Sequence record: PQ287320.1
DNA: 64,000 nt
Strand: one strand, 5' to 3'
The stretch's first letter is position 1; every line of letters starts with the position of its first letter. The translations under genes were made by a program, and so were the position numbers. This document shows positions 20,486-58,386 of this stretch, one piece after another. Under the pieces are notes generated by a model, which worked only from the letters and a program-made list of their open reading frames with translations, was not told where the DNA came from and searched no databases.

Positions 20486-20501
20486 GTCGTGAATCTTGAC
20501 A
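20486..20501 (+). promoter_or_regulatory. GANTC/-35 promoter (portal)
   Basis: GTCGTGAATCTTGACA. Confidence 0.7.
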
Positions 20502-20609
20502 ACCGGGCGTTAACCATGTCACTTTCCCCGAGCTTGCCCTCCCCGGCAGGCCTCCCACGTCAAACTTCGGGGAGGACTTGCGTCCTCCCCGCTCTTTCCT
20601 CGGGCGCCA

Positions 20610-22540
20610 ATGGCCGGTCAGACGCCGAACTCGTTGAACATCTCCCGCGTCGCGCGGGCGACCTCCAATGCCGTCTATCTGGTCACCCATCCGGAATACC
20701 AGCACTGGCGCCCGGAATGGACCAAGCTGCGCGACGTCCTGGCGGGCCAGCGGGAGATCAAGCGCAAGGGCGAGGCCTACCTGCCGGCCATGAAGGGCGC
20801 GGACGGGGACGACTACAAAATCTACCTGGAGCGGGCGACCTTCTTCAACATGCTCGCCCAGACGCGCGACGGCATGACCGGGATGGTCTTCCGCCGCGAT
20901 CCGGCGATCAAGAACCTCCCGCCCAAGTTCAAGGACGCCGTCCGCCGCTTCGCCAAGGACGGCTCGTCCCACGCCAACTTCGCCAAGGCCGTGCTCGCCG
21001 AGCAGGCCGGCGTGGGCCGGTTCGGCGTCATGGTCGACGTCACCGAGGCCCCGCGCAAGGGCGGCGTCCCCTCCAGCTACGCGATCGGCTACACGGCCGA
21101 GAACATCCTGGACTGGGACGAGGTCGTCGACATCGCCGGCTTCTACGTCCCCAGCCGCGTCCTGCTGCGCGAATTCGTCCGCGATCTGCGCTGGAAGACC
21201 GACATCGAGCCCCTGACCACCGCCCAGGCCCGCAAGGCGCGCGCCGCCGCCCTGGCCAAGGGCGCGTCGAGCAATCCGCTGGTCCGTCAGACCGCCCGCA
21301 CCCTCGGGGGCTACAGCTACATCACCGTCTACCGGGAACTGAAGCTCGAAGAGATCGAGTGGCCCTCGGGCGAGGTCAAGCCGGCCTATGTCCAGTACCT
21401 CTACGAAGAGGACCCCGAGTCGACCCCGATCGCCCGCGTCGTCCCTACCGTCCGGGGCCTGCCGCTCGACTTCATCCCGTTCAAGTTCTTCGGCTCGACC
21501 GGCAACACCGCCGACGTCGAAAAGCCTCCGCTCCTGGACATCTGCGACCTCAACCTGTCGCATTACCGAACCTACGCCGAACTGGAGTACGGCCGCCTCT
21601 TCACGGCCCTGCCGGTCTATTACGCGCCCGGCACCGACAGCGAGGGCACGGGCGAGTACCACATCGGCCCGAACATGGTCTGGGAAGTCCCGCAGGGCTC
21701 CGAGCCGGGCATCCTGGAGTACACCGGCGCGGGCCTGAAGGCCCTGGAGACCGCCCTGTCGGACAAGGAGCGGCAAATCGCCGCGATCGGCGGGCGCCTG
21801 ATGGCCGGCGCCAGCAAGTCCGTCTCCGAGAGCAACAACCAGACCGCCCTTCGTGAGGCCAACGAGCAGTCCCTGCTCCTCAACATCATCGACGCCTGCG
21901 AAGCGGGCATGACCGACGTCGTCCGCTGGTGGCTGATGTGGCGCGACGTGCCGCTCGAAGACACCCTGGACCTGCGCTACGAGATCAACACCGACTTCCT
22001 GTCGACCCCGATCGGCGCGCGCGAGATGCGGGCGATCCAGCTTATGGCCAACGACGGCCTGCTGCCCGACGAGGTCTTCTACGACTACATGCGCAAGGCC
22101 GAGGTCATCCCGTCGGAATGGACCTTCGAGGAGTTCCAGGCCGCCCGCCGCGACCCCGCCTCGTTCCTCAACAACCCCGACGCCCAGGCCCGCCAGCGCG
22201 GCTTCACCAACCGGGCCAGGAACTGGATCAGTCCCGCATGGCGCGCGAGGCCGACTTCCAGCAGCAGAAGATCGACCTCCAGGAGCGTTCGGTCGAGGTC
22301 CAGGAAAGCCACGCCGAGGTCGCCCACGCCGTGGGTTCGACCTCCGTCTCGGCCTCGCGCAAGCTGGGCGATCCCGAGCAGGCCAAGCCCGCCAAGGCCG
22401 AGCAGGGCACGCTCGACAACCAGAAGAAGCAGATCGACAACGCGGCCAAGGCCGCCGCGAAGGCTGCGGCTCAGCCCCCGGCGCCCGCGCCGGGCGCGGC
22501 CACCTCCTCCAACCGCAACCCGCGAGGCCAGGGCGGGTAA
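20610..22540 (+). CDS. Portal protein (DUF4055-type; frameshift ~22213)
   Basis: HPEY...W..LRD...G...IK..GE.YLP and Y..YL.RA.F.N motifs; true C-terminus lies in the 21929-22540 frame. Confidence 0.85.
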
Positions 22541-22583
22541 CCGTCCTCGTCCGCTCGACCTTCCATAGGGCCGATCAGTTCAC

Positions 22584-22763
22584 ATGCCGCGTTACGATTC
22601 CTTCGACGACCTGATGCACGATCTCGATCACGAGGGGATCGTCGGCGACGACGATGTGGGGGTCCTGGACGAGGAGGACCTGTCCCTCCTGACGCCGCCG
22701 TCGGTCAAGCGCTCCGCTCCCGCGCCGGCCAAGAAGCGCGGACGCCCCAAGAAGGCCGCCTGA
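22584..22763 (+). CDS. Small acidic protein with AT-hook-like tail (59 aa)
   Basis: Hand-translated; ends KKRGRPKKAA. Confidence 0.6.
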   Translation: MPRYDSFDDLMHDLDHEGIVGDDDVGVLDEEDLSLLTPPSVKRSAPAPAKKRGRPKKAA

Positions 22764-23038
22764 TGCAGCACCACACCCTGCGGTGGAACTATCCCGTGGT
22801 CGTCCTCGACGGCCGGGCCTATTGGCTCGACGAGGCGCCCGAGATCAAGCTGGTCGACCTCGACACCGGCGAACATCCCTGCGACGCGCGCGGCGAGCCC
22901 TATCCCGTCATGCGCGCCAACGCCATCGACGGCTGGATCGAGATGGAGAGCGGCGACTTCCGCCGGCCCCATGTCGAGCGGATCGGCGGGCGCTTCGCCA
23001 TCATCTCCGACCTTCCCGAGGAAACCCCCGATGCCTGA
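22763..23038 (+). CDS. Hypothetical protein
   Basis: TGATG overlap. Confidence 0.6.
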   Translation: MQHHTLRWNYPVVVLDGRAYWLDEAPEIKLVDLDTGEHPCDARGEPYPVMRANAIDGWIEMESGDFRRPHVERIGGRFAIISDLPEETPDA

Positions 23039-23204
23039 CATGCTGATCGGCGACCCCAACGCCGAGCGGACCATCCAGGTCCTGGCCCTGCACCAGGACG
23101 AGTTCGACGCCTTCGTCCCCACGCCCGAGCAGCAGGCGGCGATCGCGGCCGGCGATCTGATCATAGGCCTGATCCGCTATGCGACGGCGCCGCCGGCGGA
23201 ATAA
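23031..23204 (+). CDS. Hypothetical protein
   Basis: GAGG RBS. Confidence 0.55.
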   Translation: MPDMLIGDPNAERTIQVLALHQDEFDAFVPTPEQQAAIAAGDLIIGLIRYATAPPAE

Positions 23205-23208
23205 TGAC

Positions 23209-23224
23209 GTCGTGAATCTTGACA
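23209..23224 (+). promoter_or_regulatory. GANTC/-35 promoter
   Basis: GTCGTGAATCTTGACA. Confidence 0.7.
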
Positions 23225-23275
23225 CCTGGAGTCAGGTGTGATGACATCGCCCTCGTTAACCACGAGGGCTTTTTC

Positions 23276-23536
23276 ATGACCACCGCCGTCGACATCCGCG
23301 CCGCCGGACACAACATCATCGTCACCCTCGCGGACACCATCCTGAAGGATGGCGTCGAGACGGAAGTCGAGACCTACGAGTTCGTCAAGGCCGGCGAGAC
23401 CCGGACCTTCCACGTCCATCAGGCCCGTGACCTGTTCGTCACCGAGGTCCGCGACGACGAGACCGAACTGAACGCCCTGATCGCCGCCAACGACACGGCC
23501 GGCGCGCGCCAGTTCATCACCGATTCTGACCTTTAG
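23276..23536 (+). CDS. Hypothetical protein
   Basis: ATG after promoter and leader hairpin. Confidence 0.65.
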   Translation: MTTAVDIRAAGHNIIVTLADTILKDGVETEVETYEFVKAGETRTFHVHQARDLFVTEVRDDETELNALIAANDTAGARQFITDSDL

Positions 23537-23716
23537 TCGGGAGGGTCCTTTCCAGCGGGCGCATACAGGACACGCGCTGTCAATCGGTTGTGATGCGAGG
23601 CGGGGATTTGGACATAGGTCCCCGGCCAAGTCAAAGGGTGCCCTCCCGCCCCGCCGCATGGCGGGGTTCTATTACACCCCAATCACGACAAGTCCTGGTT
23701 CCATTCCGAGGTGAGC

Positions 23717-24357
23717 ATGAGCGACGACTTCGACAAGCGCTTCGACGAGCGCAAGGCCGCGATCGAGGCCGGCGTGATCGGCGACGACGTCCAGAGCCAG
23801 CTTAGGCTCCCGTTTCCGAATTCGGCCGAGGACCTGATCAAGCGCTTCTCCAGCGCCGAGCCGGTCAAGTTCGTGATCGGCGCCGCCGTGCCCCTGTCGC
23901 TCGACAAGGCCATCGACGTCGTGATGCCCGAAGACGTGATGGTCGATCTGGAGCGCGCGGGCCGCGCCGATCACGCCTTCATCGACCTGCCGTTCGAAGA
24001 GACCGAGGCCGGCCCGGCGATCTACGCGCGAGAGGGGACTGAAAAGACCCTCGCCGACTGCAAGGCCAAGTTCGCCGACGGCCAGAAGGCCTTCGGGGCG
24101 GGGCGGTCGAGGAAGCGGCGCCCAAGATCACGATCCAGGTCTACCTCAACAACGGTCAGGTGCGCGAGTACGACGTCGACACCCAGGCCGCCGCCCGCGA
24201 GCACGCCTACGAGATCATCCAGACCGGCTACCGCGCCGTCGAGGCGCGCGATCCCACCGTCCTGACCCACTGGCCGCCGCACGAGATCAAGAAGGTCAAG
24301 ATCAAGGCGCCCGAGCCCTGGAAGACGGCCCATTTCGACCGCGTGCGGGGAACCTGA
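23717..24357 (+). CDS. Hypothetical protein (frameshift ~24100)
   Basis: GAGG RBS; a -1 shift joins the 23711 and 24160 frames. Confidence 0.55.
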
Positions 24358-24590
24358 TGACCCCACTCGAAGCCGTCATCGCCCAGATCGAATCTGGCGA
24401 GCCCTTCACCTATCACACTCTGAGCGTCGTCAACGACGCGGCCGGCGGGAACGAGGCGCGCGACCGGCTGGCCGACCGCACCATCCAGAAGTACCGCCGC
24501 AAGGGCTGGATCACCTTCACCCGCGAGGGCCGCTACGTGGTCTGGCGCCCGACGCCGGCCGGCGCCGCCCAGTTCAACCTCCAGGCTTAA
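24357..24590 (+). CDS. Small winged-helix-like protein
   Basis: DRTIQKYRRKGWITF. Confidence 0.55.
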   Translation: MTPLEAVIAQIESGEPFTYHTLSVVNDAAGGNEARDRLADRTIQKYRRKGWITFTREGRYVVWRPTPAGAAQFNLQA

Positions 24591-24600
24591 GGAGCCTCCC

Positions 24601-24981
24601 ATGTGCGTCGTCTCCGCCGTGATGGACTACGGCCGCCGCGAATGGCCCGACCTCCTGGGGCCGGGCGGCCCGACCATCGTTCCGGGCGATCAACCCTGGT
24701 TCGAGATCATCTCGCCGGGCCTGCCCCCGCGCCCGGTCTATCCCAAGCCCAAGGTCCCGACCCGCGCCGAGATCGAGGCCTTCCGTCGGCTGGTCAAGGC
24801 CGCCCAGGAGTTCGACGAGCAGACCGGCCAGCCGCACTGCGAGGACCCCGAGAAGATCAAGCTTCTCGACGCGATCAACCGTCTGGCCGAGCGCCTGGAC
24901 GCGATCGAGCAGCGCCTCGCCGCCCAGGACAGCGCCGCCGCCGAGGACGCGGCGGCCATCGCCGCCTCGGTCAAGTCGTGA
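24601..24981 (+). CDS. Hypothetical protein
   Basis: AAGGAG RBS. Confidence 0.65.
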   Translation: MCVVSAVMDYGRREWPDLLGPGGPTIVPGDQPWFEIISPGLPPRPVYPKPKVPTRAEIEAFRRLVKAAQEFDEQTGQPHCEDPEKIKLLDAINRLAERLDAIEQRLAAQDSAAAEDAAAIAASVKS

Positions 24982-25226
24982 GCGTCTTCGACCTTCCCGC
25001 CGACGGCTTCGACCGTCGCAAGCCGCTCTACCGGGCCTTCGACCTCGACGGCGAGACCCAATGGTGGACGGTGATCCAGGCCCTGAACGCGCCGGGCCGC
25101 CGCTGCACGCCGGACGAGGAGCGGGTCATCTACGCCTATCTCGATCGCCAGCCCTGGGCCGGCAAATTCTGGGCCTGCTACCGGGCGACCGGCAAGGCCA
25201 CCATCTATGCGAGCTTGCCGCTATGA
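24978..25226 (+). CDS. Hypothetical protein
   Basis: GTGA overlap. Confidence 0.55.
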   Translation: MSVFDLPADGFDRRKPLYRAFDLDGETQWWTVIQALNAPGRRCTPDEERVIYAYLDRQPWAGKFWACYRATGKATIYASLPL

Positions 25227-25507
25227 AACTCACCGTCAGCGGTCACGACATGAGCGGTCCCGAGACCGTCTACCTGATGCTGGTCCCCCGCGTAGGCGTG
25301 CGCCTGGAGACGGACAAGCCCGTCACCCTGCGCTTCGACGCCCTGCCGGGCGCGGCCGGTTCGATCCAGATCGACGCTAAGTCCCCGCTCAAGACGGCCG
25401 ACATCACCGATCCGAGCGAGATCACCTTCCTCCCGACGGGCGCCGAGCAGGTGTTCTTCATCAACGGCAACGGCCGCTGGAAGCTGACCTTCCGCGAGCA
25501 GGCCTGA
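25223..25507 (+). CDS. Hypothetical protein
   Basis: ATGA overlap. Confidence 0.6.
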   Translation: MKLTVSGHDMSGPETVYLMLVPRVGVRLETDKPVTLRFDALPGAAGSIQIDAKSPLKTADITDPSEITFLPTGAEQVFFINGNGRWKLTFREQA

Positions 25508-25752
25508 TGCCGCCCCTCCCGCCGCAGGGCATGCCGAACAACATGCCGTTCGGCCGCGAGGGGTTCCCGCAGGTCGAGAAGATCGACGCGGTGCGCAACA
25601 TCGTCCACTTCGCCAGCGGCGGGCAGGCCCCGATCACCAGCTACCTGCATCGAGGCGAGGAGGTCGGCAACCCCCTGGCGGCCGACGTCATCGTCTGCGG
25701 ACCCTATGGCGGCAAGTGGCTGGTCATCCCCGTCTCCGAGGACGTCCTGTGA
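25507..25752 (+). CDS. Hypothetical protein
   Basis: TGATG overlap. Confidence 0.6.
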   Translation: MPPLPPQGMPNNMPFGREGFPQVEKIDAVRNIVHFASGGQAPITSYLHRGEEVGNPLAADVIVCGPYGGKWLVIPVSEDVL

Positions 25753-25994
25753 GCCGCCCGCGCAGCGTGACCGAGGTCATGTGCGACGAGTTCCGCGACC
25801 TCCTGACCAAGGGCTTCTACGTCACCGACGAGCACGGCGAGGTCCACGGTCCCGGCACGCCCCTGGGGGATGCGGCCCTGGCGGCGACCAAGGCGTGGCG
25901 CGGTGACCTCTGGAAGGCGTTCCGGGCGATCGACGACAGCATGTGCCCGGTCCGGGTCCACGAGCGCGAGGCCGCCAAGCGCGTGTCCGGCTGA
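25749..25994 (+). CDS. Hypothetical protein
   Basis: GTGA overlap. Confidence 0.55.
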   Translation: MSRPRSVTEVMCDEFRDLLTKGFYVTDEHGEVHGPGTPLGDAALAATKAWRGDLWKAFRAIDDSMCPVRVHEREAAKRVSG

Positions 25995-26097
25995 TGTCCG
26001 AACATGTCCGGCTTAAGTCAAGTTTATAGACCTCTTTATTGATTTCATTGAGGAAATCGGTCTCTGCGGATGTCCGGACATGTCCGGTTAATGTCCG
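25984..26097. repeat. Two triplets of helically phased TGTCCG repeats flanking an AT-rich core
   Basis: TGTCCG at 25984, 25995, 26005 and 26071, 26081, 26092. Confidence 0.8.
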
Positions 26098-26111
26098 GCT
26101 CCAAAATCGGT

Positions 26112-26127
26112 GTCGTGATTCTTGACA
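26112..26127 (+). promoter_or_regulatory. GANTC/-35 promoter
   Basis: GTCGTGATTCTTGACA. Confidence 0.7.
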
Positions 26128-26178
26128 CCCCCTGTCGTCTGTGGTGACATCCCCTCGTTAACCACGACGGGCTCCCCG

Positions 26179-26526
26179 ATGATCCGCCTGACCAAGTCCC
26201 AGCACTACACCAACACGGCCGAGAACGACCGTAGCTGGTACCTGGACCCGACCCTGACGTTCGAGGTCCACGCCCTTCCGACCCTGGCCGAGGGGCAAAA
26301 GTGCGGCTACCCGTCGGCGGGCGCCCTTGTCTGTATGAATGGCGAGGCCCACTACGTCGACGAGGACGTCGGCACCATCCTGACCCTGATCAAGATCGCC
26401 CGTGCCCCGCATCTCTACCCCCTGCAAGACTCGAACGGTCGCCTGATCAATCGTGACGCCTTGATCTATCTGGGCTTTTCGAACGGCGCGTTCGATTACG
26501 GCCTGATGAGCGAGGTGTACGCGTGA
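26179..26526 (+). CDS. Hypothetical protein
   Basis: ATG after promoter and leader hairpin. Confidence 0.6.
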   Translation: MIRLTKSQHYTNTAENDRSWYLDPTLTFEVHALPTLAEGQKCGYPSAGALVCMNGEAHYVDEDVGTILTLIKIARAPHLYPLQDSNGRLINRDALIYLGFSNGAFDYGLMSEVYA

Positions 26527-27206
26527 TCGGCAACCTTCTCGCTCAGCGCCAGCCCGAGGCGCTCGACATCGCCCGCAAGATCGTTGACGGCAGCATCCTG
26601 ACCGACAACGCCCTCGCGACGATCCTGGCCCAGGCCCTGGTGGACGAGGCCGCGACCTACGAGGACCGGCGCCTCGCCTTCATGCACCCGTCGATCCTCT
26701 GCGCGAACGGCGAGTATTACGACTTCACCGACCCGGATTCCTTCTCCTGGGACATCGAGGTGATCGCCGCCGGCCTGCGCGCCCCGCGCTTCACCGCCCA
26801 GACCCGCAGCAAGGGGACCTATTCGATCCTCCAGCACTCGGTCCTGGCCAGCTACAACGTCCCCAAGGGCTTCGAACTGGAGGCCCTGCTGCACGACGCC
26901 CAGGAGAGCGTACTGGGCGACAAGGCCACGCCGTTCAAAATCCTCCTGCCCGACTACAAGCACTACGAGGACCTCGCCGAGCGCGCCGTTCGCCGCCGCT
27001 ACGGCCTGCCCGAGACGATGTCGCCGGAGGTCAAGCACGCCGACCTCGTCATGCTCGCCACCGAGAAGCGCGACATCATGCCGAACCCTGAGGACGAGTG
27101 GGAGATGCTGAAGGCGGTCAAGCCCTCGGAATACCCGATCGAGGTCTGGGACGTCGAGCATGCCCGCAAGGTCTTCCTGGCGCGCTTCGCCGATCTGACA
27201 GCCTGA
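26523..27206 (+). CDS. HD-domain phosphohydrolase (YfbR/YfdR-like 5'-deoxynucleotidase)
   Basis: YSILQHSVL...ALLHDAQE...GD..TPFK...VKHADL. Confidence 0.85.
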   Translation: MIGNLLAQRQPEALDIARKIVDGSILTDNALATILAQALVDEAATYEDRRLAFMHPSILCANGEYYDFTDPDSFSWDIEVIAAGLRAPRFTAQTRSKGTYSILQHSVLASYNVPKGFELEALLHDAQESVLGDKATPFKILLPDYKHYEDLAERAVRRRYGLPETMSPEVKHADLVMLATEKRDIMPNPEDEWEMLKAVKPSEYPIEVWDVEHARKVFLARFADLTA

Positions 27207-27244
27207 CGTCCGCTCCTGACGTAGAACGATACGAGAACATTCAC

Positions 27245-30281: not shown

Positions 30282-30807
30282 GGCCCACGGCTCGTCGCCG
30301 GCGCAAGAAGCCGGCGCGCAACTTCCGTATGATGGCGGCGACCTCGACCGCGAGCGTCGCCAATCACCGCACCTATCCGGGCAAGCTGGTCGCCCCCGCG
30401 CCCGGCCACTGCCGCTGGTGTCTGGGGCGATCTATAAGCCGGACGGTTCAATCAACCGCCGCAAGACCTTCTGCTCCCAGACCTGCGTCTCCCACTACCT
30501 CCTGCGGGCTGATCCCGCCGAGATGCGCCGCCACGTCTTCTTCCGCGACCAGGGCGTCTGCGCCATGTGCAAGAAGCGCTGGCTCTACCTGGACGATAAG
30601 TGGCAGGCCGACCACATCGAACCGTTGTTCCTGGCGTTCGGCGACCTCGCCTACTGGGAGCCGGAGAACGTCCAGGTCCTCTGCACCGACCCCTGCCACA
30701 AGGAAAAATCGGCCGAGGACATGCGGAAATACGGCTTCGTCCTGAAGCTGACCCGCGAGCAGAAGAAGCCTCAGGAGCGGCGCCGGTTAGCCGAAAGGCT
30801 GGCTTAA
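30278..30807 (+). CDS. HNH endonuclease (frameshift ~30425)
   Basis: RD.GVCAMC...WQADHI.P...NVQVLC..CH..K. Confidence 0.8.
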
Positions 30808-30821
30808 GTCAAGCGCCTACT

Positions 30822-30837
30822 GTCGTGAATCTTGACA
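30822..30837 (+). promoter_or_regulatory. GANTC/-35 promoter (scaffold/capsid operon)
   Basis: GTCGTGAATCTTGACA. Confidence 0.7.
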
Positions 30838-30967
30838 TTCCGCGAATTTTTTGCTAGGTTCCCCAGCATCCCGATAGAGGTTGGCTCCACCCCCGACGCC
30901 GCCAACTGTCTCGCAACGCGACGGGTCGTCGCCCACCCCATGGGGTCCATGGGAAGAGAGAAACTAC

Positions 30968-31759
30968 ATGCCTGTTCTGTCCTACGATACCCTGGACCTC
31001 GTTCCCGAGGGCCTTCGCGAATACGCCAAGCAAGTCGATGGCAGCGACAAGTTCCAAGTGAACGTCGTCAGCGCCAACAAGATCGACGAGTTTCGCGACA
31101 ACAACATCAAGATTTCGAAGGAGCGTGACTCGCTCCTGGCCGAGGTCGAAACGCTGCGTCCGCTGGTGGGTGAAGACCCCGCTGCTTTCGCGGCCCAACT
31201 TGAAGAACTGCGCTCGATCGCGCAGCGCGTCAAGGACGGCGACCTGAAGGAAGGCCGCGCCCTCGAAGAAGCGCTTCAGAAGCGCACCGAGGAGATGCGG
31301 AAGCAGTACGACGAGCGTCTCCAAGCCACGGGCAAGGAACGCGCGGCTTGGCAGTCCAAGCACGACGAACTGGAGCGTCGCTACAAGCAGTCGCTGGTGT
31401 CGAACGCGATCACCGCCGCTGCGATGGCCCAGGGCTCGGGCGTTGACCCGGCCGCCCTGAACGACGTGGTTCGCTCGGGTCTGGACGTGTTCCGGGCTGA
31501 CGACCAGGGCCGGCTGACCCCCTATGTGGGCGATGCTCCGCTCTACGGCGCCGACGGCGTGACGCCGATGACCGCCAAGGAGTGGCTGGCCAAGCTGAAG
31601 GAGGAGAAGCCCTACTTCTTCCTCGACAGCCGGGGTGGCGGCGCCGGTGGCGACAAGACCAAGACGGTTCACGGCCACACCGCCGAACGTCTGAAGGGCA
31701 TGTCGGCGGCCGAGCGTCTGGCGGCGGCCAACGGCGAGAAGTCGGCTCGTCTGCGCTAA
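30968..31759 (+). CDS. Capsid scaffolding protein (putative)
   Basis: Coiled coil, C-terminal GGGAGG tract, directly upstream of the MCP. Confidence 0.65.
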   Translation: MPVLSYDTLDLVPEGLREYAKQVDGSDKFQVNVVSANKIDEFRDNNIKISKERDSLLAEVETLRPLVGEDPAAFAAQLEELRSIAQRVKDGDLKEGRALEEALQKRTEEMRKQYDERLQATGKERAAWQSKHDELERRYKQSLVSNAITAAAMAQGSGVDPAALNDVVRSGLDVFRADDQGRLTPYVGDAPLYGADGVTPMTAKEWLAKLKEEKPYFFLDSRGGGAGGDKTKTVHGHTAERLKGMSAAERLAAANGEKSARLR

Positions 31760-33520: not shown

Positions 33521-33553
33521 AAACCCCGGACCTCACGGTCCGGGGTTTTTCTT
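33521..33553 (+). terminator. Intrinsic terminator
   Basis: AAACCCCGGACC/GGTCCGGGGTTT plus T-tract. Confidence 0.85.
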
Positions 33554-33599
33554 TATGTCGAGAGCTTGACACTGCGACAGCCCGCCGCAGGGTCGCCGG

Positions 33600-33610
33600 G
33601 AATCTTGACC
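33600..33610 (+). promoter_or_regulatory. GANTC/-35 promoter (variant)
   Basis: GAATCTTGACC. Confidence 0.45.
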
Positions 33611-35344: not shown

Positions 35345-35360
35345 GTCGTGAATCTTGACA
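35345..35360 (+). promoter_or_regulatory. GANTC/-35 promoter
   Basis: GTCGTGAATCTTGACA. Confidence 0.7.
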
Positions 35361-48749: not shown

Positions 48750-49526
48750 ATGGCGATCCAGAACCCACACTCCACCACGCCCGGCGTGATGCCCCACCTG
48801 ACGCCCGGCGAAATCGGGATCAACAAGGCCGACGACATCCTGTGGTTCCGGTCCGAGGGCCGCCGCGTCCCGATCATCCTGAGCGACCTCACCCGCGCCC
48901 CGCCCGCCACGGGCTATGTCGGTGCGCCCCTGGCCCTCAAGAATGGACAGCCGATCTGGGACGCCAAGCGCGCGCCTTCCTCCGTGGTCAACGGGCAGGT
49001 CAAGGTCGATCTTCCGCCGGATGTGGGCCTGCACGCCATGCCGAGCGTGCTCCTCACCGGCCTGGGTTCGGACCGCGTCCTAGCAACCAACGCCCTGGAC
49101 CTGTCGCCCTTCTACGTCCGGTCCGATTCGATCACCATCACCCACCTGTCCTTCAGCGTCCGCTCCGCCGGCGCCCCGGCGATGCGGGTCGGGATCGTCG
49201 ACAGCTTCGGCGTCGTCCAGGCCGACGTCCTGGTCGCCGCCCCGGCCGTGGGCGCCAACGTGGTCGCCCTCTCGCCGGTCCTGACCCTCCAGCGAGGGAC
49301 CTACCGCACCATCCTGGCGACGACCGGCAATGTGACGGTCGGCGTCGTCACCGGCGCGCGCATGGAGCAGGGCTGGGACATCATCGGCGACGCCCCCTCG
49401 TTCATCCACGGCTACAGCGGCTCCAAGAACACCGGAGGCGGGATCGGCAGCTTGCCGGCCCTGACGCCTCGCCGCGACAGCGCGCCGGGCCAGGACCACT
49501 GCGTCCTGATGCGCTGGACGGCGTGA
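48750..49526 (+). CDS. Fibre-associated structural protein
   Basis: N-terminal L.PGEIGIN..D..LW motif; paralogous to the tail of the giant gene. Confidence 0.65.
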   Translation: MAIQNPHSTTPGVMPHLTPGEIGINKADDILWFRSEGRRVPIILSDLTRAPPATGYVGAPLALKNGQPIWDAKRAPSSVVNGQVKVDLPPDVGLHAMPSVLLTGLGSDRVLATNALDLSPFYVRSDSITITHLSFSVRSAGAPAMRVGIVDSFGVVQADVLVAAPAVGANVVALSPVLTLQRGTYRTILATTGNVTVGVVTGARMEQGWDIIGDAPSFIHGYSGSKNTGGGIGSLPALTPRRDSAPGQDHCVLMRWTA

Positions 49527-49535
49527 ATCTTGACA
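49522..49535 (+). promoter_or_regulatory. GANTC/-35 promoter
   Basis: CGTGAATCTTGACA. Confidence 0.65.
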
Positions 49536-51692: not shown

Positions 51693-51696
51693 ACAT

Positions 51697-51786: not shown

Positions 51787-51792
51787 AGATGT

Positions 51793-51878
51793 GCGAAAGT
51801 GGCGGAACAAGGTAGACGCACCGGTCTCAGGTACCGGCGGCTTCGGTCATGAGGGTTCGAGTCCCTCCTTTCGTACCA
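51793..51878 (+). tRNA. trnL: tRNA-Leu(CAG)
   Basis: Class II body; loop CT-CAG-GT. Confidence 0.9.
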
Positions 51879-51885
51879 ACGACAT

Positions 51886-51970
51886 GCCGGTCTGGCGGAA
51901 ATGGCAGACGCAGTGGCTTCAAGTCCCACCGCCTTCGGGCGTCCCGGTTCGATGCCGGGGACCGGCACCA
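51886..51970 (+). tRNA. trnL: tRNA-Leu(CAA)
   Basis: Class II body; loop TT-CAA-GT. Confidence 0.85.
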
Positions 51971-51976
51971 GACTGA

Positions 51977-52064
51977 TGCGAAGTGGCGGAACTTGGTAGA
52001 CGCACCGGCATGAGAGGCCGGCGCCCTTCGGGGCGTGAGGGTTCGAGTCCCTTCTTCGCGACCA
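51977..52064 (+). tRNA. trnL: tRNA-Leu(GAG)
   Basis: Class II body; loop AT-GAG-AG. Confidence 0.85.
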
Positions 52065-52067
52065 ATA

Positions 52068-52129
52068 TCCCGAACGGGAAGATTCCTGGCGGCGCGGCCG
52101 TCGCGACCTGGGAATCTTCCCGTTCGGGA
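52068..52129. repeat. 19-bp perfect inverted repeat between tRNAs
   Basis: TCCCGAACGGGAAGATTCC / GGAATCTTCCCGTTCGGGA. Confidence 0.9.
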
Positions 52130-52143
52130 AAGAACGAGATCAT

Positions 52144-52214
52144 GCTGATTGCCGCTGGGCGGATGGCGGGTTGTGTCCCCGCAATGCACGGTTCGATCCC
52201 GTGGGTCAGTACCA
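52144..52214 (+). tRNA. trnH: tRNA-His(GTG), A73, no encoded G-1
   Basis: GCGGG-TT-GTG-TC-CCCGC; GTTCGA; ACCA. Confidence 0.65.
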
Positions 52215-52219
52215 GATAC

Positions 52220-52290
52220 GGGGTATGCGCAGGGCGCAGGCATCCTTTGCAAGGAAGTCGGGGTGGGTTCGAGTCCCACATACTCCACCA
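52220..52290 (+). tRNA. trnA: tRNA-Ala(TGC)
   Basis: Loop TT-TGC-AA; G3:U70 identity pair; short D arm. Confidence 0.8.
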
Positions 52291-52294
52291 ACAT

Positions 52295-52384
52295 GGAAGG
52301 TCAACCGGACAGGCGCGCCGGGACCGCCTCGAAAGCGGATCGGACTCGAAAGGGTCTGGGGATCGAGACCTCGGCCTTCCTCCA
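52295..52384 (+). tRNA. trnS: tRNA-Ser(CGA)
   Basis: Loop CT-CGA-AA; long arm; T-loop ATCGA. Confidence 0.75.
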
Positions 52385-52388
52385 ACAT

Positions 52389-52480
52389 GGTGAGCGAACG
52401 GGACAGGCGCGCCCGGTCCGCTTGGAAAGCGAGACGCAGTCCGCAAGGGGTGTGGGATTCGAGTTCTCCGCTCACCGCCA
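52389..52480 (+). tRNA. trnS: tRNA-Ser(GGA)
   Basis: Loop TT-GGA-AA; long arm; G73. Confidence 0.8.
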
Positions 52481-52484
52481 TCAT

Positions 52485-52574
52485 GGTATGCGAACCGGAC
52501 AGCCGCGCCGGCGCCGTTTGCTAAACGAGCGGGGCTCGCAAGGGCCTGGGGATGGTGTCCTCCGCCTACCGCCA
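52485..52574 (+). tRNA. trnS: tRNA-Ser(GCT), degenerate T arm
   Basis: Loop TT-GCT-AA; long arm; GCCA. Confidence 0.65.
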
Positions 52575-53016
52575 CTTCGACGTTGACACGCGTGACGCGC
52601 TCTGTCATACGTCACGACAGGACGAACGCCCCTTGACCGGGTTGGTTGTCACACCGGGTCGTCACGCCCCGTTGAGGCCCTAGTAGTCCTTTCGTGTGGA
52701 GTTTTCCGCCTCCCTCCCAGACAAGGAGGCGGACCCCAACATCGCGATCTCCCCGTGATCGTCGGCGACGGGCGCCGTCAGAGACCTCGGCCTGCGCGGC
52801 TCCGCTGCGGCCCAGGGATCGTCCCGACCAAATTTTTTATGTCGTGGTGCTTGACACCGCCAAACGCTTCTGCTAGGGTTCACGTCATGAGCAAGACTTA
52901 TCGTCAATTTGTGCGCCAGATTCAGGTCGTCCGGAATATCCGGGCGGGCCGCTCGCGCATGGCTGACGGAGGCACTCGGGTCTAACGACCCAGACCAAGC
53001 TCCACCAGCTTTCGAG

Positions 53017-53060
53017 AGGCCCGCCTGGAAACCCCAGGCGGGCCTTTTCTTTTTCTTTTT
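53017..53060 (+). terminator. Intrinsic terminator
   Basis: AGGCCCGCCTGG/CCAGGCGGGCCT plus long T-tract. Confidence 0.85.
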
Positions 53061-53114
53061 CCCTTCGCCGATCACGGAGATCGCAGATGAACAACGGAGG
53101 CTAGTCCTCCCCAT

Positions 53115-53199
53115 GGATGCTTAAAGCTGGAGGGCTCCAGCCGGGGACTGTAAATCCCCTCTCTTCGGAGGAGTGGTTCGATCCCACAAGCATCCACCA
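53115..53199 (+). tRNA. trnY: tRNA-Tyr(GTA)
   Basis: Loop CT-GTA-AA; long arm. Confidence 0.85.
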
Positions 53200-53204
53200 A
53201 CAAC

Positions 53205-53280
53205 GGACTCGTAGCTCAGCAGGTAGAGCGCCGGCTTGAAACCCCGGAGGTCGGAGGTTCGATTCCTCCCGTTTCCACCA
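53205..53280 (+). tRNA. trnF: tRNA-Phe(GAA)
   Basis: Loop TT-GAA-AC. Confidence 0.9.
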
Positions 53281-53285
53281 ACACC

Positions 53286-53361
53286 GCCCGATGAGCCAGA
53301 TGGGAAGGCATCGCCGTGACATGGCGACATTGAGAAGGTTCGATTCCTTCATCAGGCACCA
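53286..53361 (+). tRNA. trnV: tRNA-Val(GAC)
   Basis: Loop GT-GAC-AT. Confidence 0.85.
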
Positions 53362-53363
53362 AC

Positions 53364-53439
53364 GCAAGTGTAGCTCAGTTGGTAGAGCAGCGGACCGATA
53401 ATCCGCCCGTCCCTGGTTCGAGTCCAGGCATTTGCACCA
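53364..53439 (+). tRNA. trnI: tRNA-Ile(GAT)
   Basis: Loop CC-GAT-AA. Confidence 0.9.
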
Positions 53440-53446
53440 TTTCTGA

Positions 53447-53521
53447 TGTGGCATAGCTCAGGGGTAGAGCGCGCGCTTGATAAGCGTGAGGACGGGGGTT
53501 CGAAGCCCTCTGCCACTACCA
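53447..53521 (+). tRNA. trnI: tRNA-Ile(GAT), second copy
   Basis: Loop TT-GAT-AA. Confidence 0.85.
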
Positions 53522-53554
53522 GTTCCCAGGCCGGCGGAGATGCGCCGGACCTGA

Positions 53555-53630
53555 TGGCGTTTAGCATAGTGGGAGTGCAGGGGTGTCACATACCTCGATT
53601 GAACTGGTTCGATTCCAGTAACGCCAACCA
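53555..53630 (+). tRNA. trnV: tRNA-Val(CAC)
   Basis: Loop GT-CAC-AT. Confidence 0.8.
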
Positions 53631-53635
53631 AATGT

Positions 53636-53709
53636 TGAGGGTTCGTCTAACGGTAGGACGGCTGGGTCTGGTCCAGCTAATCTAGGTTCGAGTCCTAGCC
53701 CCTCATCCA
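53636..53709 (+). tRNA. trnQ: tRNA-Gln(CTG)
   Basis: Loop GT-CTG-GT. Confidence 0.85.
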
Positions 53710-53716
53710 AGTTTGT

Positions 53717-53790
53717 TCTCGGGTGGTCTAATGGTAAGACATCTGGTTTTGGTCCAGAGGATTGGGGTTCGATTCCTTGGCCGAGAACCA
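53717..53790 (+). tRNA. trnQ: tRNA-Gln(TTG)
   Basis: Loop TT-TTG-GT. Confidence 0.85.
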
Positions 53791-53805
53791 ACTACTTGAG
53801 TTTAT

Positions 53806-53880
53806 TCCAGTCAATGCACAAGGTGTGCAGCGGCACTGTTAATGCCTGTGAGCCCGGTTCGATTCCGGGGTCTGGAGCCA
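53806..53880 (+). tRNA. trnN: tRNA-Asn(GTT)
   Basis: Loop CT-GTT-AA; GCCA. Confidence 0.85.
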
Positions 53881-53908
53881 ACACGCCGGCCTTAGGGCCG
53901 GCCCACGC

Positions 53909-53991
53909 GCCCTGGTAACCGGGGAGGACTACGAATCCTCTAGCCGTAGCAGGAGTTGAGAAGGGTGGTTCGAATCCACTCCAGGGCGCCA
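53909..53991 (+). tRNA. tRNA-Arg(ACG)-like RNA lacking a D arm
   Basis: Perfect acceptor GCCCTGG/CCAGGGC; loop CT-ACG-AA; only 7 nt between acceptor and anticodon stems; ~23-nt extra region. Confidence 0.55.
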
Positions 53992-53999
53992 ATCTTTAT

Positions 54000-54082
54000 A
54001 GCGCGCAGGCCGAGCAGGATCATCGTCAGGCGTCGCCCTCCGAAGGCGAAGAGGCCCGGTTCGAGTCCGGGGCGCGCTGCCA
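54000..54082 (+). tRNA. trnR: tRNA-Arg(CCG), enlarged D region
   Basis: Loop CT-CCG-AA; AGCGCGC/GCGCGCT acceptor. Confidence 0.7.
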
Positions 54083-54087
54083 TCCCC

Positions 54088-54165
54088 GCGCGGGTAGCTC
54101 AACGGAGCCAGAGCAGCCGTCTTCTACACGGTGGGTTGGGGGTTCGAGTCCCTCCCCGTGCGCCA
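54088..54165 (+). tRNA. trnR: tRNA-Arg(TCT)
   Basis: Loop CT-TCT-AC; GCCA. Confidence 0.9.
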
Positions 54166-54194
54166 AAGCTTGACGGGCGATGCCGAATCGCCCA

Positions 54195-54690
54195 GGATCG
54201 GAGCGTAGGCCTCTTCCCGTGGGCCTGACATATACGTCCGCCAGCACTGCCATTCCGCGTCAGCGGGCGCGACGCGAGGAGGGTTAACCCCTCGTTGTCG
54301 TGCAGTCGGGTGGTGTGGACGTCCCAACGTGATCTTCGAACGCGGCATGCCGTGGAGGGGTGATCGGATGGCGAACCAAGGGACACCTCCTTATCCTGGC
54401 CTGGGCCGCATGGGGCTCCGCTGGGAGAAACGGCCTGACCCGACCGGAGGTGCGTCCAGGATGCCGGCTCCCCATGCCAGAGCCTCGTGGACTAGGGTCT
54501 GAAATTTCTGGCTTCGATGTGTTGACACGAGGATCGGAGCCCGCTACAACCCTCCTTGTCAGAGCGGCGCTGGGCCTGAAGGCCCGCCGTGAGCTTCTGT
54601 CGTTGTCGTCAGGAACGGCCCGCCAGCAATCCCGCCGGCGGGTCGTTTCGTTATGGGCGTCCTGCGACATTCAGTCGACCAAGGGTAGTG
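54195..54690 (+). ncRNA. Candidate large (~500 nt) structured ncRNA
   Basis: No credible ORF; at least nine stems found by eye, including long-range pairings; TTGACG at 54170 upstream. Confidence 0.5.
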
Positions 54691-54704
54691 TCGTGAATCT
54701 TGAC
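54690..54704 (+). promoter_or_regulatory. GANTC/-35 promoter
   Basis: GTCGTGAATCTTGACT. Confidence 0.65.
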
Positions 54705-54773
54705 TTTCGTGGGCCTTTCCGGTAGCGTGCAGACCATCAGCTATCGCTCATAAGTCGGGGACAGAGAGCCGCA

Positions 54774-55193
54774 ATGTCGCAAGACCAAACCGGCTCCGCG
54801 TCGCAGAGCCAAGAACACATCTTCCGTAAGCTGGATGAGCTTGGCGCAATGCACATGCGTACCCGTGAGGACATGGCCGAGGTGAAGGAGAAGGTGAAGA
54901 CCATCGCCTCCTCCCAGGAGCGCTTCGAGAAGCGCCAGGATCACTTCGAGCAGGAAATCTGGCGCGAGATGGAAGCTCGCCACTCCGAGACCAAGGAGTC
55001 CCTGGCCCGCATCAGCGCCGAGACCGCCGAGCGTATCGACGAGATCGAATCCAAGGTCAACACGATTCGCGAGGAGCGGATCGCCGAGAAGGCCCAATGG
55101 CGTGGCCCCGAGAAGGCGATCGCCGCACTGGTCGCGGTCGCCGGCGCGATCGCCGCGATCGCTTCCATCATGACCTTCATGAAGGCGCATTAA
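54774..55193 (+). CDS. Coiled-coil protein with C-terminal transmembrane helix
   Basis: Heptad-rich body; AIAALVAVAGAIAAIASIM. Confidence 0.7.
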   Translation: MSQDQTGSASQSQEHIFRKLDELGAMHMRTREDMAEVKEKVKTIASSQERFEKRQDHFEQEIWREMEARHSETKESLARISAETAERIDEIESKVNTIREERIAEKAQWRGPEKAIAALVAVAGAIAAIASIMTFMKAH

Positions 55194-55301
55194 GGAGTTA
55201 CAGTCAAGCTTCGGAGGGTGCGGCCAGAAGTCGCGGTTCTTGACACCCGATCTGGGCCGGAATAACCATACAGGCATCGTTCCTGGGTGGAGATTTCCTA
55301 G

Positions 55302-55520
55302 ATGCCTGCTGCGCTTACCGTGGTCTCGAAAGAGACCGAGAATACCACCCTGGAAGTCGATCTGGACGACGCTCACGGGCGTCTCATCCAGGTCCTCAAC
55401 ACCGCCGCAGAAGCGGGCCTGGGTGAGATGACGTCGGAGGTCTACGACGAGATCAAGGCCCTGCTCGAACAGGCGTCTGAAGAACTCTCGTCGTGCGGGG
55501 TTGCGCTAGGAGTCCTTTAA
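55302..55520 (+). CDS. Small acidic hypothetical protein
   Basis: GGAG RBS. Confidence 0.6.
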   Translation: MPAALTVVSKETENTTLEVDLDDAHGRLIQVLNTAAEAGLGEMTSEVYDEIKALLEQASEELSSCGVALGVL

Positions 55521-55542
55521 TCGCCATCCCAGAGGGAGCGAC

Positions 55543-56412
55543 GTGTCCGAGTCTTCTGAGTTCAACCCGCTCGACCAATCCCAGTTCCCTGCGAAAATGA
55601 CGAAGACCGCCGCGCGACAGGCGCGGCGGTTGGAGCGCAGCCAGAAAAAGGACCCCACGGCTTCCAAGCCGAACTACAAGCCTCTCGAAGGCAAGACGGA
55701 TCGCCAACGGCGTTACATCCAGTCTCTGAAGTCCGGCACGAGCGCGATCGCCATCGGCGGGGCCGGCACCGGCAAGACCTACATCCCCTCTCGCATCTTC
55801 GCCAAGAAGCTCCTGGACGGCCGCACCGAGCGGCTGATCATCGCGCGCGTCACGGCCTCGCGCCCCAAGCACGCCCTGGGCTTCCTGCCCGGCAAGCTGG
55901 AGGCCAAGCTGGCGCCGTGGCTGGTCCCGGTGGTCGAGGGCATCCGCGCCGAGATGTCGGCCCAGGCCTTCGACCAGTTGAAGGAGGCTGGCAAGATCGA
56001 GTTCGCCTCCTTCGAACACATGCGCGGCCGGACCTTCTCGGAGTGCTGCGTCCTGTTCGACGAGGCCCAGAACGCCGACTACAAGGACCTGAAGCTGGTC
56101 CTGACCCGCTGGGGCGAGGACGCTCAATATGCCGTCACCGGCGACATCGACCAGATCGACGTCGAGGACAGCGGCCTGGAGACGGTCCTGGACATCATCG
56201 AGGACCACGACGTGCCGATCGACGTCATCGAGTTCACCGACGACGATGTCGTCCGCTCGGCGATGGCCAAGCACTGGGTCAAGGCGTTCTCGGCCTATGA
56301 GGGCAAGAATCGTCCTCGGCGTTCACATCAGGCGTTCCGTGTCAACAGGAATCTTGACGCTCGCCCCGCTTTTCTCGATAATGGCCATGTCACGAAACCC
56401 GTGGCATCGTGA
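55543..56412 (+). CDS. phoH: PhoH-family ATPase
   Basis: GGAGTGKT, LGFLPG, HMRGRTF, DEAQN, TGDIDQID, DVVRS. Confidence 0.92.
   Translation: MSESSEFNPLDQSQFPAKMTKTAARQARRLERSQKKDPTASKPNYKPLEGKTDRQRRYIQSLKSGTSAIAIGGAGTGKTYIPSRIFAKKLLDGRTERLIIARVTASRPKHALGFLPGKLEAKLAPWLVPVVEGIRAEMSAQAFDQLKEAGKIEFASFEHMRGRTFSECCVLFDEAQNADYKDLKLVLTRWGEDAQYAVTGDIDQIDVEDSGLETVLDIIEDHDVPIDVIEFTDDDVVRSAMAKHWVKAFSAYEGKNRPRRSHQAFRVNRNLDARPAFLDNGHVTKPVAS
56349..56359 (+). promoter_or_regulatory. GANTC/-35 promoter (variant) for neck genes
   Basis: GAATCTTGACG. Confidence 0.5.
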
Positions 56413-56414
56413 CA
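56388..56414. repeat. TGTCACGAAACC-type palindrome copy
   Basis: TGTCACGAAACCCGTGGCATCGTGACA. Confidence 0.75.
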
Positions 56415-56432
56415 AAGTGACGTAGCGCAGCC

Positions 56433-56954
56433 ATGGCCTTCTCCTTCATCGTTGAAACGGGCGCCGGCGATCCGGCGGCGAACTCGTACTGCGACGTGCA
56501 GTTCGCGGACGACTACATCTACGCCAACGTCTATGCCAGCACCCCGTGGGAGGCCCTGGAGGACGAGGACAAGGAACGCTTCCTGGTCCGCGCCTCCAAG
56601 TACCTCGACCGCACCGTCGACTGGAACGGGACCAAGGTGGAGGAAGACTCCGGGCTGCGCTGGCCGCGCGCGGGGGTGACCGATGTCGACGGGTTCATGA
56701 TCCGCGACGACGTCATCCCGCCGCAACTGATGGAGGCGACGGCGGAATTGGCCGCCGCCCTCGTCGCCAACGACTGGACCTCGCCCCAGACGACGCGCGG
56801 CATGCGCGAAATCCAGGTCGACGTCATCGAATTGAAGTTCGACAGCGAAATCCAGCGCGGGTCGATGCCCGACATCGTCATGCAAATCCTGGAGGGCCTG
56901 GGCGTCGTAAAGACCGGCACCAAGCCCGCCTTCAAGAAGATCATCCGCCACTAA
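56433..56954 (+). CDS. Head-tail connector/adaptor (DnaT-like family)
   Basis: VETG.G...ANSY...AD.Y...L.WPR...IP. Confidence 0.8.
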   Translation: MAFSFIVETGAGDPAANSYCDVQFADDYIYANVYASTPWEALEDEDKERFLVRASKYLDRTVDWNGTKVEEDSGLRWPRAGVTDVDGFMIRDDVIPPQLMEATAELAAALVANDWTSPQTTRGMREIQVDVIELKFDSEIQRGSMPDIVMQILEGLGVVKTGTKPAFKKIIRH

Positions 56955-57349
56955 TGGCCCTTCGCTCCTTCATCCGCTCGCAGGTCCTGGTTGCCTTCAA
57001 CCAGCTTGACGACGTCGCCCGGCCCTGGACCTATGTCCGGCGGTCCGGCGAGGCCGTGCGCGACGTGGAAGAAGGGACGACCACCTACCCCACCACCGAA
57101 ATCCCGATCCCCAAGGCGGTCAAGACCCGCTTCACCAAGGAGGAGAAGGAGCGCGACAGCACCATCGAGTCGACCGACGAGAAGGTCCTGTTCCCGCGCG
57201 TCTACCTCCCGATCGATTTCGAGACCGCGACCTCCGACTACCTCGTCGACGAGAAGGACGTGATCTGGGAGATCAAGAAGGACTATTCGGACCCGGCCGA
57301 CGCCGTGGCGATCCTGAACGTCCGCACCACGCGGAAGAAGGTCCCGTGA
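56954..57349 (+). CDS. Head closure protein (putative)
   Basis: Position and beta-rich pattern. Confidence 0.6.
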   Translation: MALRSFIRSQVLVAFNQLDDVARPWTYVRRSGEAVRDVEEGTTTYPTTEIPIPKAVKTRFTKEEKERDSTIESTDEKVLFPRVYLPIDFETATSDYLVDEKDVIWEIKKDYSDPADAVAILNVRTTRKKVP

Positions 57350-57822
57350 GGTCGGCCGGCGGCGCGAAGCTGAACTTCTACACCGACGGGAACCTGGAAG
57401 CCGGCTTCAAGCGCTTCTTCGCCAACGCCGAGAAGCGCTATGACGAGCGGGCCGATCGCCTGCTGATCAAGCTCAACGAACTGATCCTGTCCCGGACCCC
57501 GGTCTGGGAGGGCGACACGGTCCACAACTGGCGCTGGTCCACCCGCGCCCCCGACATGCGTCACGAGGACCCGATCGCCAATGTCGATCCGGGCCGCACG
57601 AGCGAGATGGCCCTGGGCGAGGAGCCTCGTCGCCGCGCCAACGAGGCGCGTCCGCGTCAGTCGCTCGCCGGCGCCCTGCGGGCCAAGGAGCCGATCGACA
57701 TCTATCTGACCAACACGGCCGAGAGCGCCGTGGACCTGGAATACGGGCTGCTCCCGACCCAGGCGCAGAGCAGAAACCGCATGGGGATGGTCCGAATCTC
57801 TCTTAAAGAGGTGTTCGGATGA
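57346..57822 (+). CDS. Neck/tail-completion protein (HK97 gp10-like)
   Basis: TPVWEG....NW; IYLTN...AVDLEYG; GMVRIS. Confidence 0.7.
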   Translation: MRSAGGAKLNFYTDGNLEAGFKRFFANAEKRYDERADRLLIKLNELILSRTPVWEGDTVHNWRWSTRAPDMRHEDPIANVDPGRTSEMALGEEPRRRANEARPRQSLAGALRAKEPIDIYLTNTAESAVDLEYGLLPTQAQSRNRMGMVRISLKEVFG

Positions 57823-57892
57823 TCGCCGCCTACCTCATCCTGCCGCGCGTCTATCTGGCCGCGTGGCTCTCGTTCTGGCTCGGAGAGGACTG

Positions 57893-58347
57893 ATGCTCGA
57901 ACATGACATGCTCCGGCAGGTCCTGGAGCAACAGGCCGTCGCCGCCGCGCCGACCATCGGCCTCAAGCTCAGCTTCGACAACTCCGAGTTCGTCCAACCC
58001 ACCGACGGGACGCACTTCGCCGAGTTTTGGGTCCAGACCGGCAACACCCTGCCGGCCGAGATCACCGGCCCGCGTGGGTTCGAAAAGACCTCCGGCCTGA
58101 TCCAGTTCACCCTCATGGCCCCGAGGAAGAGGGCAATGGGGCGATCCTCAAGAAGGCCGGGGCGCTCAAGAAGGTCTTCAACCGGCGCCAGCTTGTCGTC
58201 CCGCCGGATGGCTATGTCAACCTGGACCCGATGTCGATCCAGTCGCACGGCAAGCCGATCAACGGCCGCTACAACGCCATGGTCTGGGCGACCTTCTGGT
58301 TCTACCACCGCGACCCGGACGCGTCCGAGCGCTGGCTGCGCGGTTGA
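57893..58347 (+). CDS. Tail terminator protein (frameshift ~58120)
   Basis: GLIQFTLMAP continues EEEGNGAILKKA... after a -1 shift. Confidence 0.7.
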
Positions 58348-58370
58348 CGCCGCCCTTCGCGACTGCTACT

Positions 58371-58386
58371 GTCGTGAATCTTGACA
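58371..58386 (+). promoter_or_regulatory. GANTC/-35 promoter (tail tube)
   Basis: GTCGTGAATCTTGACA. Confidence 0.7.

Follow-up and report, generated by a model that had tools for sequence, protein, structure and literature searches.

Several bacteriophages mark their middle or late promoters with one activator site and do without a good -35 element, as with Mor and C of Mu, Ogr of P2, and MotA of T4. In Caulobacter, whose cell-cycle biology has phiCbK as its model phage, GANTC is the site of the methylase CcrM, and GcrA is a sigma-70 cofactor that reads GANTC. GcrA boxes are centered at -20, at -30, or between +5 and +30; none lies further upstream, which has been ascribed to linker length. 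Among the 32 variants of NGANTCN, AGATTCA comes 32nd in GcrA occupancy, and it served to abolish binding of GcrA at PmipZ (Haakonsen 2015, PMC4647560). The CtrA dependence of the phiCbK early-left genes has also been published (PMC9437464). Here, we analyzed a 64,000-nucleotide stretch of DNA ("the window"), identical to bases 1 to 64000 of Caulobacter phage BL57 (PQ287320.1; 225,731 bp; host, C. vibrioides CB15), in which a GANTC site directly abuts a -35 box to give GAWTCTTGAC (W, A or T). BL57 is a phiCbK-like siphophage with DNA about 86% identical to that of phiCbK, Swift, and Karma. We compared the whole BL57 genome with those of five relatives: phiCbK, Bajun, Colossus, CcrSC, and Marchewka. 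The phiCbK-like phages form the subfamily Dolichocephalovirinae. We found no description of phiCbK promoters or of this motif in the searchable literature.

GAWTCTTGAC occurs 10 times in the window, always on the + strand, at 20491, 23214, 26117, 30827, 33600, 35350, 49525, 54695, 56349, and 58376, as a reading of this DNA from its letters alone (the sequence-only reading) had listed. Shuffled sequences held a mean of 0.20 copies and a maximum of 2. Seven of the copies are part of an exact 15-mer, GTCGTGAWTCTTGAC, with starts at 20486, 23209, 26112, 30822, 35345, 54690, and 58371. In IMG/VR, this 15-mer was multi-copy solely in isolate-derived phiCbK-like genomes, and the remaining matches were single-copy. 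The same reading had placed the motif at operon starts, and from each of the 10 sites the nearest downstream annotated start codon in the same orientation is indeed 57 to 136 bp away. Nine are intergenic; the tenth (56349) falls within the last 64 nt of the PhoH gene. It was also correct that no copy is present in positions 1 to 20485, the stretch holding the full CtrA boxes.

Across the whole genome we counted 20 copies, compared with 0.25 expected, and their strand always follows that of the genes. Copies on the + strand at 20 to 80 kb cover the structural and lysis modules, those on the - strand at 88 to 109 kb cover the replication module, and three further copies are at 115.5, 117.9, and 209.5 kb; the copy at 209.5 kb precedes the terminase genes. 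The distance to the next annotated start ranges genome-wide from a few tens of bp to about 200 bp. No GAWTCTTGAC was found between 118 and 209 kb or in the terminal repeats of BL57. Two more members of the class in the window (52841 and 55230) retain the upstream half without GANTC, which is thus present in 10 of 12 members. Three copies of the upstream half, at 20275, 20479, and 99460, lack TTGAC (0.5 expected for all copies), so that the half would behave as a binding unit of its own. The half-site at 20479 forms an inverted pair with the portal promoter.

The geometry of these sites was derived from a pool of 89 sites of the same architecture in five phages, phiCbK being excluded as a near-duplicate; the statistics were read solely at positions not fixed by the search pattern, with numbering from the first T of TTGAC. 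Because the sites were selected on TTGAC, these bases do not vary, and A at +5 (frequency, 0.65) completes them to TTGACA. Further downstream, A reaches 0.80 at +24 versus a background of 0.17 (p ~3e-38), T and G peak at +20 and +21, and T reaches 0.43 at +28. This is the layout of a sigma-70 promoter: a -35 box, a 17-bp spacer, an extended -10 TG, and a -10 hexamer with A at -11 and T at -7. The start is placed near +35 from the first T of TTGAC, and the GANTC center falls near -38. A scan built on the Escherichia coli consensus, which is unsuited to weak -10s, called only one of the six class sites in the 20- to 36-kb region; most class sites were missed because their -10 hexamers are weak.

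In 18 orthologous pairs from BL57 and phiCbK, the upstream flank is about 55% identical, whereas the GTCGT pentamer, which was not part of the selection, is 94 to 100% identical. Thus, the upstream element is under purifying selection. Taken with its numbers, placement, and promoter geometry, the motif is well supported as a real, functional promoter signal before most of the virion, lysis, replication, and packaging operons of BL57. The sequence-only reading is supported in taking the sites for non-early promoters that are separate from the CtrA-box block. The label "middle/late" that had been given to them is roughly right, except that the class also heads the replication module, which is called early in the phiCbK RNA sequencing paper.

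Two other promoter classes could be told apart. Full CtrA boxes, TTAA-N7-TTAAC, lie at 2604, 6879/6893, and 9238 and in the repeat copies of these sites, and are confined to the terminal-repeat block; the class promoters have no such box at or near their -35. What the class promoters do have is a TTAAC half-site, found no more than 65 bp downstream of TTGAC at 10 of the 20 class sites versus 17 of 495 other TTGAC sites (p = 3e-9), and often within the spacer. A protein bound to such a half-site would be expected to act as a brake, which fits the idea of lytic deferment (PMC9437464). A distinct early class occupies 122 to 198 kb and has GTG directly before TTGACAG, a -10 of the CTAGAAG type, and TGGCG upstream; its shared leader ends in GACGACAAC and a Shine-Dalgarno sequence. 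Twenty of its 23 copies lie within 115 to 198 kb, and one is in the window (54519 to 54527, + strand). In Colossus, the early class has RAGAG before TTGACAG. A two-stage program, CtrA first and GcrA or methylation later, had been proposed for this DNA. The separation of the class from the CtrA-box block held up, but the GcrA/methylation stage was not supported. BL57 has three classes with separate territories.

The same promoter architecture was present in all six phages. The shared plan is a 6-mer of the form TG-n-C-G/A-Y, a linker n-W-W-T-C, and then TTGACA. The 6-mer is specific to the lineage (TGTCGT, as in BL57, or CGTCGY, TGCCAG, TGACGC, or TGCCGT), and the A/T-rich linker and TCTTGACA are conserved after it. 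The five bases before TTGAC are GAATC in BL57, phiCbK, and Bajun, mixed in Colossus (8 of about 22 class sites carry GANTC), ATTTC, GTTTC, or AATTC in CcrSC (RWTTC), and AAATC in Marchewka. A single orthologous promoter, that of the portal gene, reads GAATC in BL57, phiCbK, and Bajun, TTTTC in Colossus, ATTTC in CcrSC, and AAATC in Marchewka. Moreover, BL57 and phiCbK share four conserved class members that lack GANTC. By this comparison, GANTC is a dispensable part of the promoter. The 6-mer differs even among phages of the same host strain, three of these lineages infecting CB15, and this points to a reader encoded by the phage and not by the host. Five Caulobacter genomes of 4.4 to 5.6 Mb contained only 1 to 5 copies each of the composite; hence, no host regulon uses it.

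The sequence-only reading had regarded GANTC as the functional core of these promoters, read by CcrM and GcrA. Several observations disagree with this. The phage 7-mer, TGAATCT, is AGATTCA on the opposite strand, that is, the variant with the lowest GcrA occupancy and a known loss-of-binding mutant, and the phage sites depart from the extended GcrA consensus YGAKTCK/G. The GANTC center at -38 is outside the positions used by GcrA, and no excess of GANTC was detected at -34 to +31 of the class promoters. The central base is A in 19 of the 20 copies, a requirement that CcrM does not have. In favor of the reading, BL57, much like its host, has fewer GANTC sites than a Markov estimate predicts (295; observed/expected, 0.65), yet GANTC is fixed at the class promoters, which hold about 7% of all BL57 GANTC sites. 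Against it, GANTC is missing from orthologous promoters in three lineages that infect Caulobacter or Brevundimonas. No CcrM-family methylase (PF01555) was found in the five phages tested (BL57, phiCbK, Bajun, Colossus, and Marchewka), and host ccrM mRNA rises only 1.3- to 1.5-fold upon phiCbK infection. As a separate observation, BL57_138c (98370 to 99440, - strand), outside the window, matches the C-5 cytosine DNA methylases (PF00145, 117 bits), and relatives occur in each of the six phages.

GANTC in the phiCbK/Bajun clade probably results only from the make-up of the A/T-rich linker, which has G as its first base and, at its end, the TC flanking the -35. GANTC is probably a by-product of a longer, phage-specific control site and is probably not read as a methylation site. 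The suggestion that methylation of the site could serve as a timer is poorly supported, since GANTC is replaced in three related lineages and in four conserved promoters of the clade. Of the earlier proposals, the one that fits the evidence best is that the TCGTGA part binds a phage factor.

These results suggest that the non-early promoters of the phiCbK-like phages combine a promoter for host sigma-73 with a lineage-specific upstream site for a phage-encoded regulator, most likely an activator; we give this reading a probability of roughly 45%. According to this model, the host holoenzyme containing sigma-73, a sigma-70-type factor, would use TCTTGACA as an extended -35, which the 17-bp spacer separates from a weak -10 that reads TG-n-(T/C)A-nnn-T. 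The lineage-specific element directly upstream, at about -46 to -36 (TGTCGT plus GAA in BL57), would be the binding site of the regulator. Bound there, the regulator would lie beside sigma region 4, in the manner of a class II activator or of lambda cI at PRM. It would make up for the weak -10 and, later than the early class, turn on the virion, lysis, replication, and packaging operons. That such a trans-acting factor exists, that it comes from the phage, and that it activates are all points that we infer from the promoters.

Candidate readers were sought among the 83 open reading frames common to all six phages. BL57_121c (82280 to 83059, - strand; phiCbK gp109), which lies outside the window, encodes a cI/XRE-like helix-turn-helix (HTH) protein present in every one of them. 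It matches PHROG families annotated as repressors and has a long insertion inside the HTH. The predicted recognition helix of this family is the same in BL57 and phiCbK and the same in Colossus and Marchewka, and it differs in Bajun and CcrSC. The T5 A1-like protein of these phages has an N-terminal HTH as well (Gill et al.). We regard both proteins as leads and not as findings. Pfam searches of 20 core proteins of unassigned role gave no further clear transcription factor. TgrL, an early XRE factor of phiCbK, was also considered: its published 15-position matrix (S2 Table, PMC10688885) scored no better within 60 bp of the class sites than in random windows, in both BL57 and phiCbK, and TgrL was discarded as the reader.

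Some points weigh against a dedicated activator. The candidate factor is backed by its conservation and by the variation of its helix among six related phages only. Concerted evolution of the promoter copies, with no dedicated reader, could likewise produce lineage-specific motifs. The -35 is already at consensus, so that an activator would not strictly be required, and the partial dyad TGnC-N9-GnCA covers the -35 and would suit a repressor equally well. Finally, the class cannot set timing alone, as it stands at the head of "early" replication modules and "late" structural ones alike.

Among the alternatives, the one that survives best needs no dedicated factor. The upstream element would be an extended -35 or UP-like sequence that strengthens the promoter for host RNA polymerase, with timing coming from other features, such as the CtrA-type half-sites, the quality of the -10, or DNA entry. 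The -35 is perfect, the TC before TTGACA presumably matches the classical extended -35 consensus, and the element occupies the position of the proximal UP subsite for the alpha C-terminal domain. None of the candidates examined could be pinned as the reader, as this explanation would have it. However, the 6-mer is GC-rich and varies between phages of one host strain, copies of the upstream half exist without a -35, and the genomes of the host genus make no use of the composite. We therefore consider it unlikely that the host polymerase suffices.

A repressor could be the reader in place of an activator. The 17-bp partial dyad TGTC-N9-GACA, centered on the middle base of GANTC, would then be the operator of a dimeric phage repressor, with the cI/XRE-like protein as candidate, that occludes the -35 and holds the operons off at some stage. 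In BL57 and Colossus, 12 of the 17 positions obey the dyad symmetry, and every lineage shares the outer arms TGnC and GnCA. The inverted half-site pair in the portal control region and the repressor annotation of the PHROG families matched by BL57_121c point in the same direction. However, Marchewka has lost the inner symmetry, it is usually with an activator site that lytic phages mark many middle or late promoters, and the gene for BL57_121c itself lies within a module served by the class promoters. An operator function thus seems rather unlikely.

The sequence-only reading had also proposed looking for gcrA homologues elsewhere in the genome, and one was found: BL57_255c (166435 to 166977, - strand; PF07750, 93 bits), which can be aligned with C. 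crescentus GcrA across the DNA-binding as well as the sigma-binding domain. Full-length homologues are present in BL57, phiCbK, and Bajun, and Marchewka has only the DNA-binding domain. In our six-phage comparison no homologue was detected in Colossus or CcrSC; for Colossus, Gill et al. likewise report none. The Bajun homologue (30556 to 31188, - strand) carries two tandem N-terminal GcrA-type DNA-binding domains followed by the sigma-binding domain. This gene offers a further candidate reader. BL57_255c, made early, would ride on domain 2 of sigma-73, read GAATC at -38, possibly independently of methylation, and activate the class in the phiCbK/Bajun clade.

GAATC is nearly fixed in the same three phages that have a full-length GcrA, and in Colossus and CcrSC, which have no gcrA gene, the linkers are relaxed. 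This co-occurrence is suggestive, but the three phages form a single clade, and it comes down to one phylogenetic event. The gene lies within the early-class territory, and weak -10s would suit a factor that promotes open-complex formation. Against this, Colossus and CcrSC have the same promoter architecture with no GcrA at all. Host GcrA reads bases and the methyl group through R33, N34, I37, G38, H41, and R42; the residues at these positions are R, S, I, G, D, and R in BL57, K, S, C, G, D, and R in phiCbK, and R, S, L, G, D, and R in Marchewka. BL57 and phiCbK have identical motifs but different residues at these positions, and their two proteins share only 57% identity; the Marchewka residues resemble those of BL57 although its promoters use AAATC. 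On these alignments, the DNA-reading residues do not co-vary with the motif. In addition, GTCGT is conserved as strongly as GAATC, and four members without GANTC are conserved. Activation by BL57_255c is thus very unlikely. A phage GcrA re-tooled in this clade as a methylation-independent sigma cofactor, reading GAATC upstream of the -35 at a position that host GcrA does not use, is a long shot; if true, it would switch on all non-early operons in swarmer cells that have neither GcrA nor CcrM.

The weakest explanation, that host CcrM methylates GANTC, host GcrA on sigma-73 reads it, and methylation of replicating phage DNA times the class, is highly improbable in the face of the GANTC evidence above and the rarity of the composite in host genomes, all the more because swarmer cells, the type that these phages infect, have no CcrM and no GcrA.

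Returning to the window, the class members, all on the + strand, can be followed from the portal gene to the major tail tube gene. The portal promoter (20486 to 20500), an exact 15-mer, lies 114 bp upstream of BL57_045 and has a half-site, TTAACCATG, in its spacer. Six bp away, on the - strand (20465 to 20479), is the inverted extra upstream half, GTCGTGATTC, which has no TTGAC and is kept in phiCbK. The next promoter (23209 to 23223) precedes BL57_049. Its predicted start is overlapped by a terminator-like hairpin (23249 to 23269, + strand), which has TTAACCA in the loop, is followed by a T-run, and lies between the predicted -10 and the start codon; similar structures follow other class promoters, and the equivalent in phiCbK is annotated as a terminator. 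A GATTC variant (26112 to 26126) precedes BL57_057, and the promoter of BL57_067 (30822 to 30836) has a canonical -10, GCTAGGTT. At 33595 to 33609, upstream of BL57_070, the upstream half is degenerate (GCCGG), and a strong terminator (33521 to 33548) comes just before it. Further promoters stand upstream of BL57_074 (35345 to 35359) and, as a GGCGT variant, upstream of BL57_087 and the tRNA array (49520 to 49534).

The first member without GANTC (52841 to 52855) has the linker GGTGC and a canonical -10 and is identical in phiCbK. It is followed by the promoter of BL57_090 (54690 to 54704) and by the second such member (55230 to 55244; GTCGC plus GGTTC), upstream of BL57_091, whose phiCbK counterpart is likewise non-GANTC. 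The site inside the 3' end of the PhoH gene (56344 to 56358), upstream of BL57_093, has GAATC-TTGAC without the GTCGT half. The last promoter (58371 to 58385) stands 110 bp ahead of BL57_097, the gene for the major tail tube. Outside the window, a variant with the linker GATCC (BL57 81917 to 81931, + strand; predicted start, about 81962) has no protein gene downstream, and in phiCbK a terminator is located about 300 nt beyond its counterpart. At the left end of the window, an unannotated open reading frame (18 to 779, + strand) matches the terminase RNaseH-like C-terminal domain (PF17289). It is the copy, within the repeat, of the end (3') of the gene for the large terminase, and the terminal repeat of the record thus begins inside that gene.

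Three promoter classes of BL57 are therefore separable: a CtrA-box class in the terminal repeat, an early class with a strong consensus, and the GAWTC-TTGAC class of the virion, lysis, replication, and packaging operons. This scheme provides a framework for interpreting the published RNA sequencing of infection and a concrete target in the search for a phage regulator. It also carries a caution, as a CcrM site at a conserved position in an alphaproteobacterial phage does not by itself amount to evidence of epigenetic control.

Compared with described systems, the class shares with the GcrA/CcrM-dependent sigma-70 promoters of Caulobacter (PMC4647560; Wu 2018, PMC5887438; Wu 2023, PMC9976885) a GANTC inside a sigma-70-type promoter, and BL57 has a GcrA homologue with both domains. 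It differs from them in the -38 center, the lowest-ranked 7-mer, a GANTC that is not conserved in orthologues, and a fixed central base. The CtrA-box promoters of phiCbK (PMC9437464) belong to the same phage program, and half of the class promoters have TTAACCA half-sites in or just after them; the former contain full boxes, whereas the latter contain half-sites only, placed where binding would repress. With lambda cI at OR2/PRM and with class II activators, the class has in common a partly dyad site of about 17 bp that abuts or overlaps the -35 and is centered near -40, and with lambda cI also a conserved cI/XRE-like HTH protein in the BL57 group. The differences are that BL57 is lytic and has about 25 promoters of this kind, that the -35 hexamer itself forms part of the site, and that binding and activation are only predicted here. 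The likeness to the Mor/C, Ogr, and MotA promoters of Mu, P2, and T4 lies in a single cis element at a fixed position before most non-early operons, distinct from the early promoters; those promoters have a poor -35, in contrast to the consensus TTGACA of the BL57 class.

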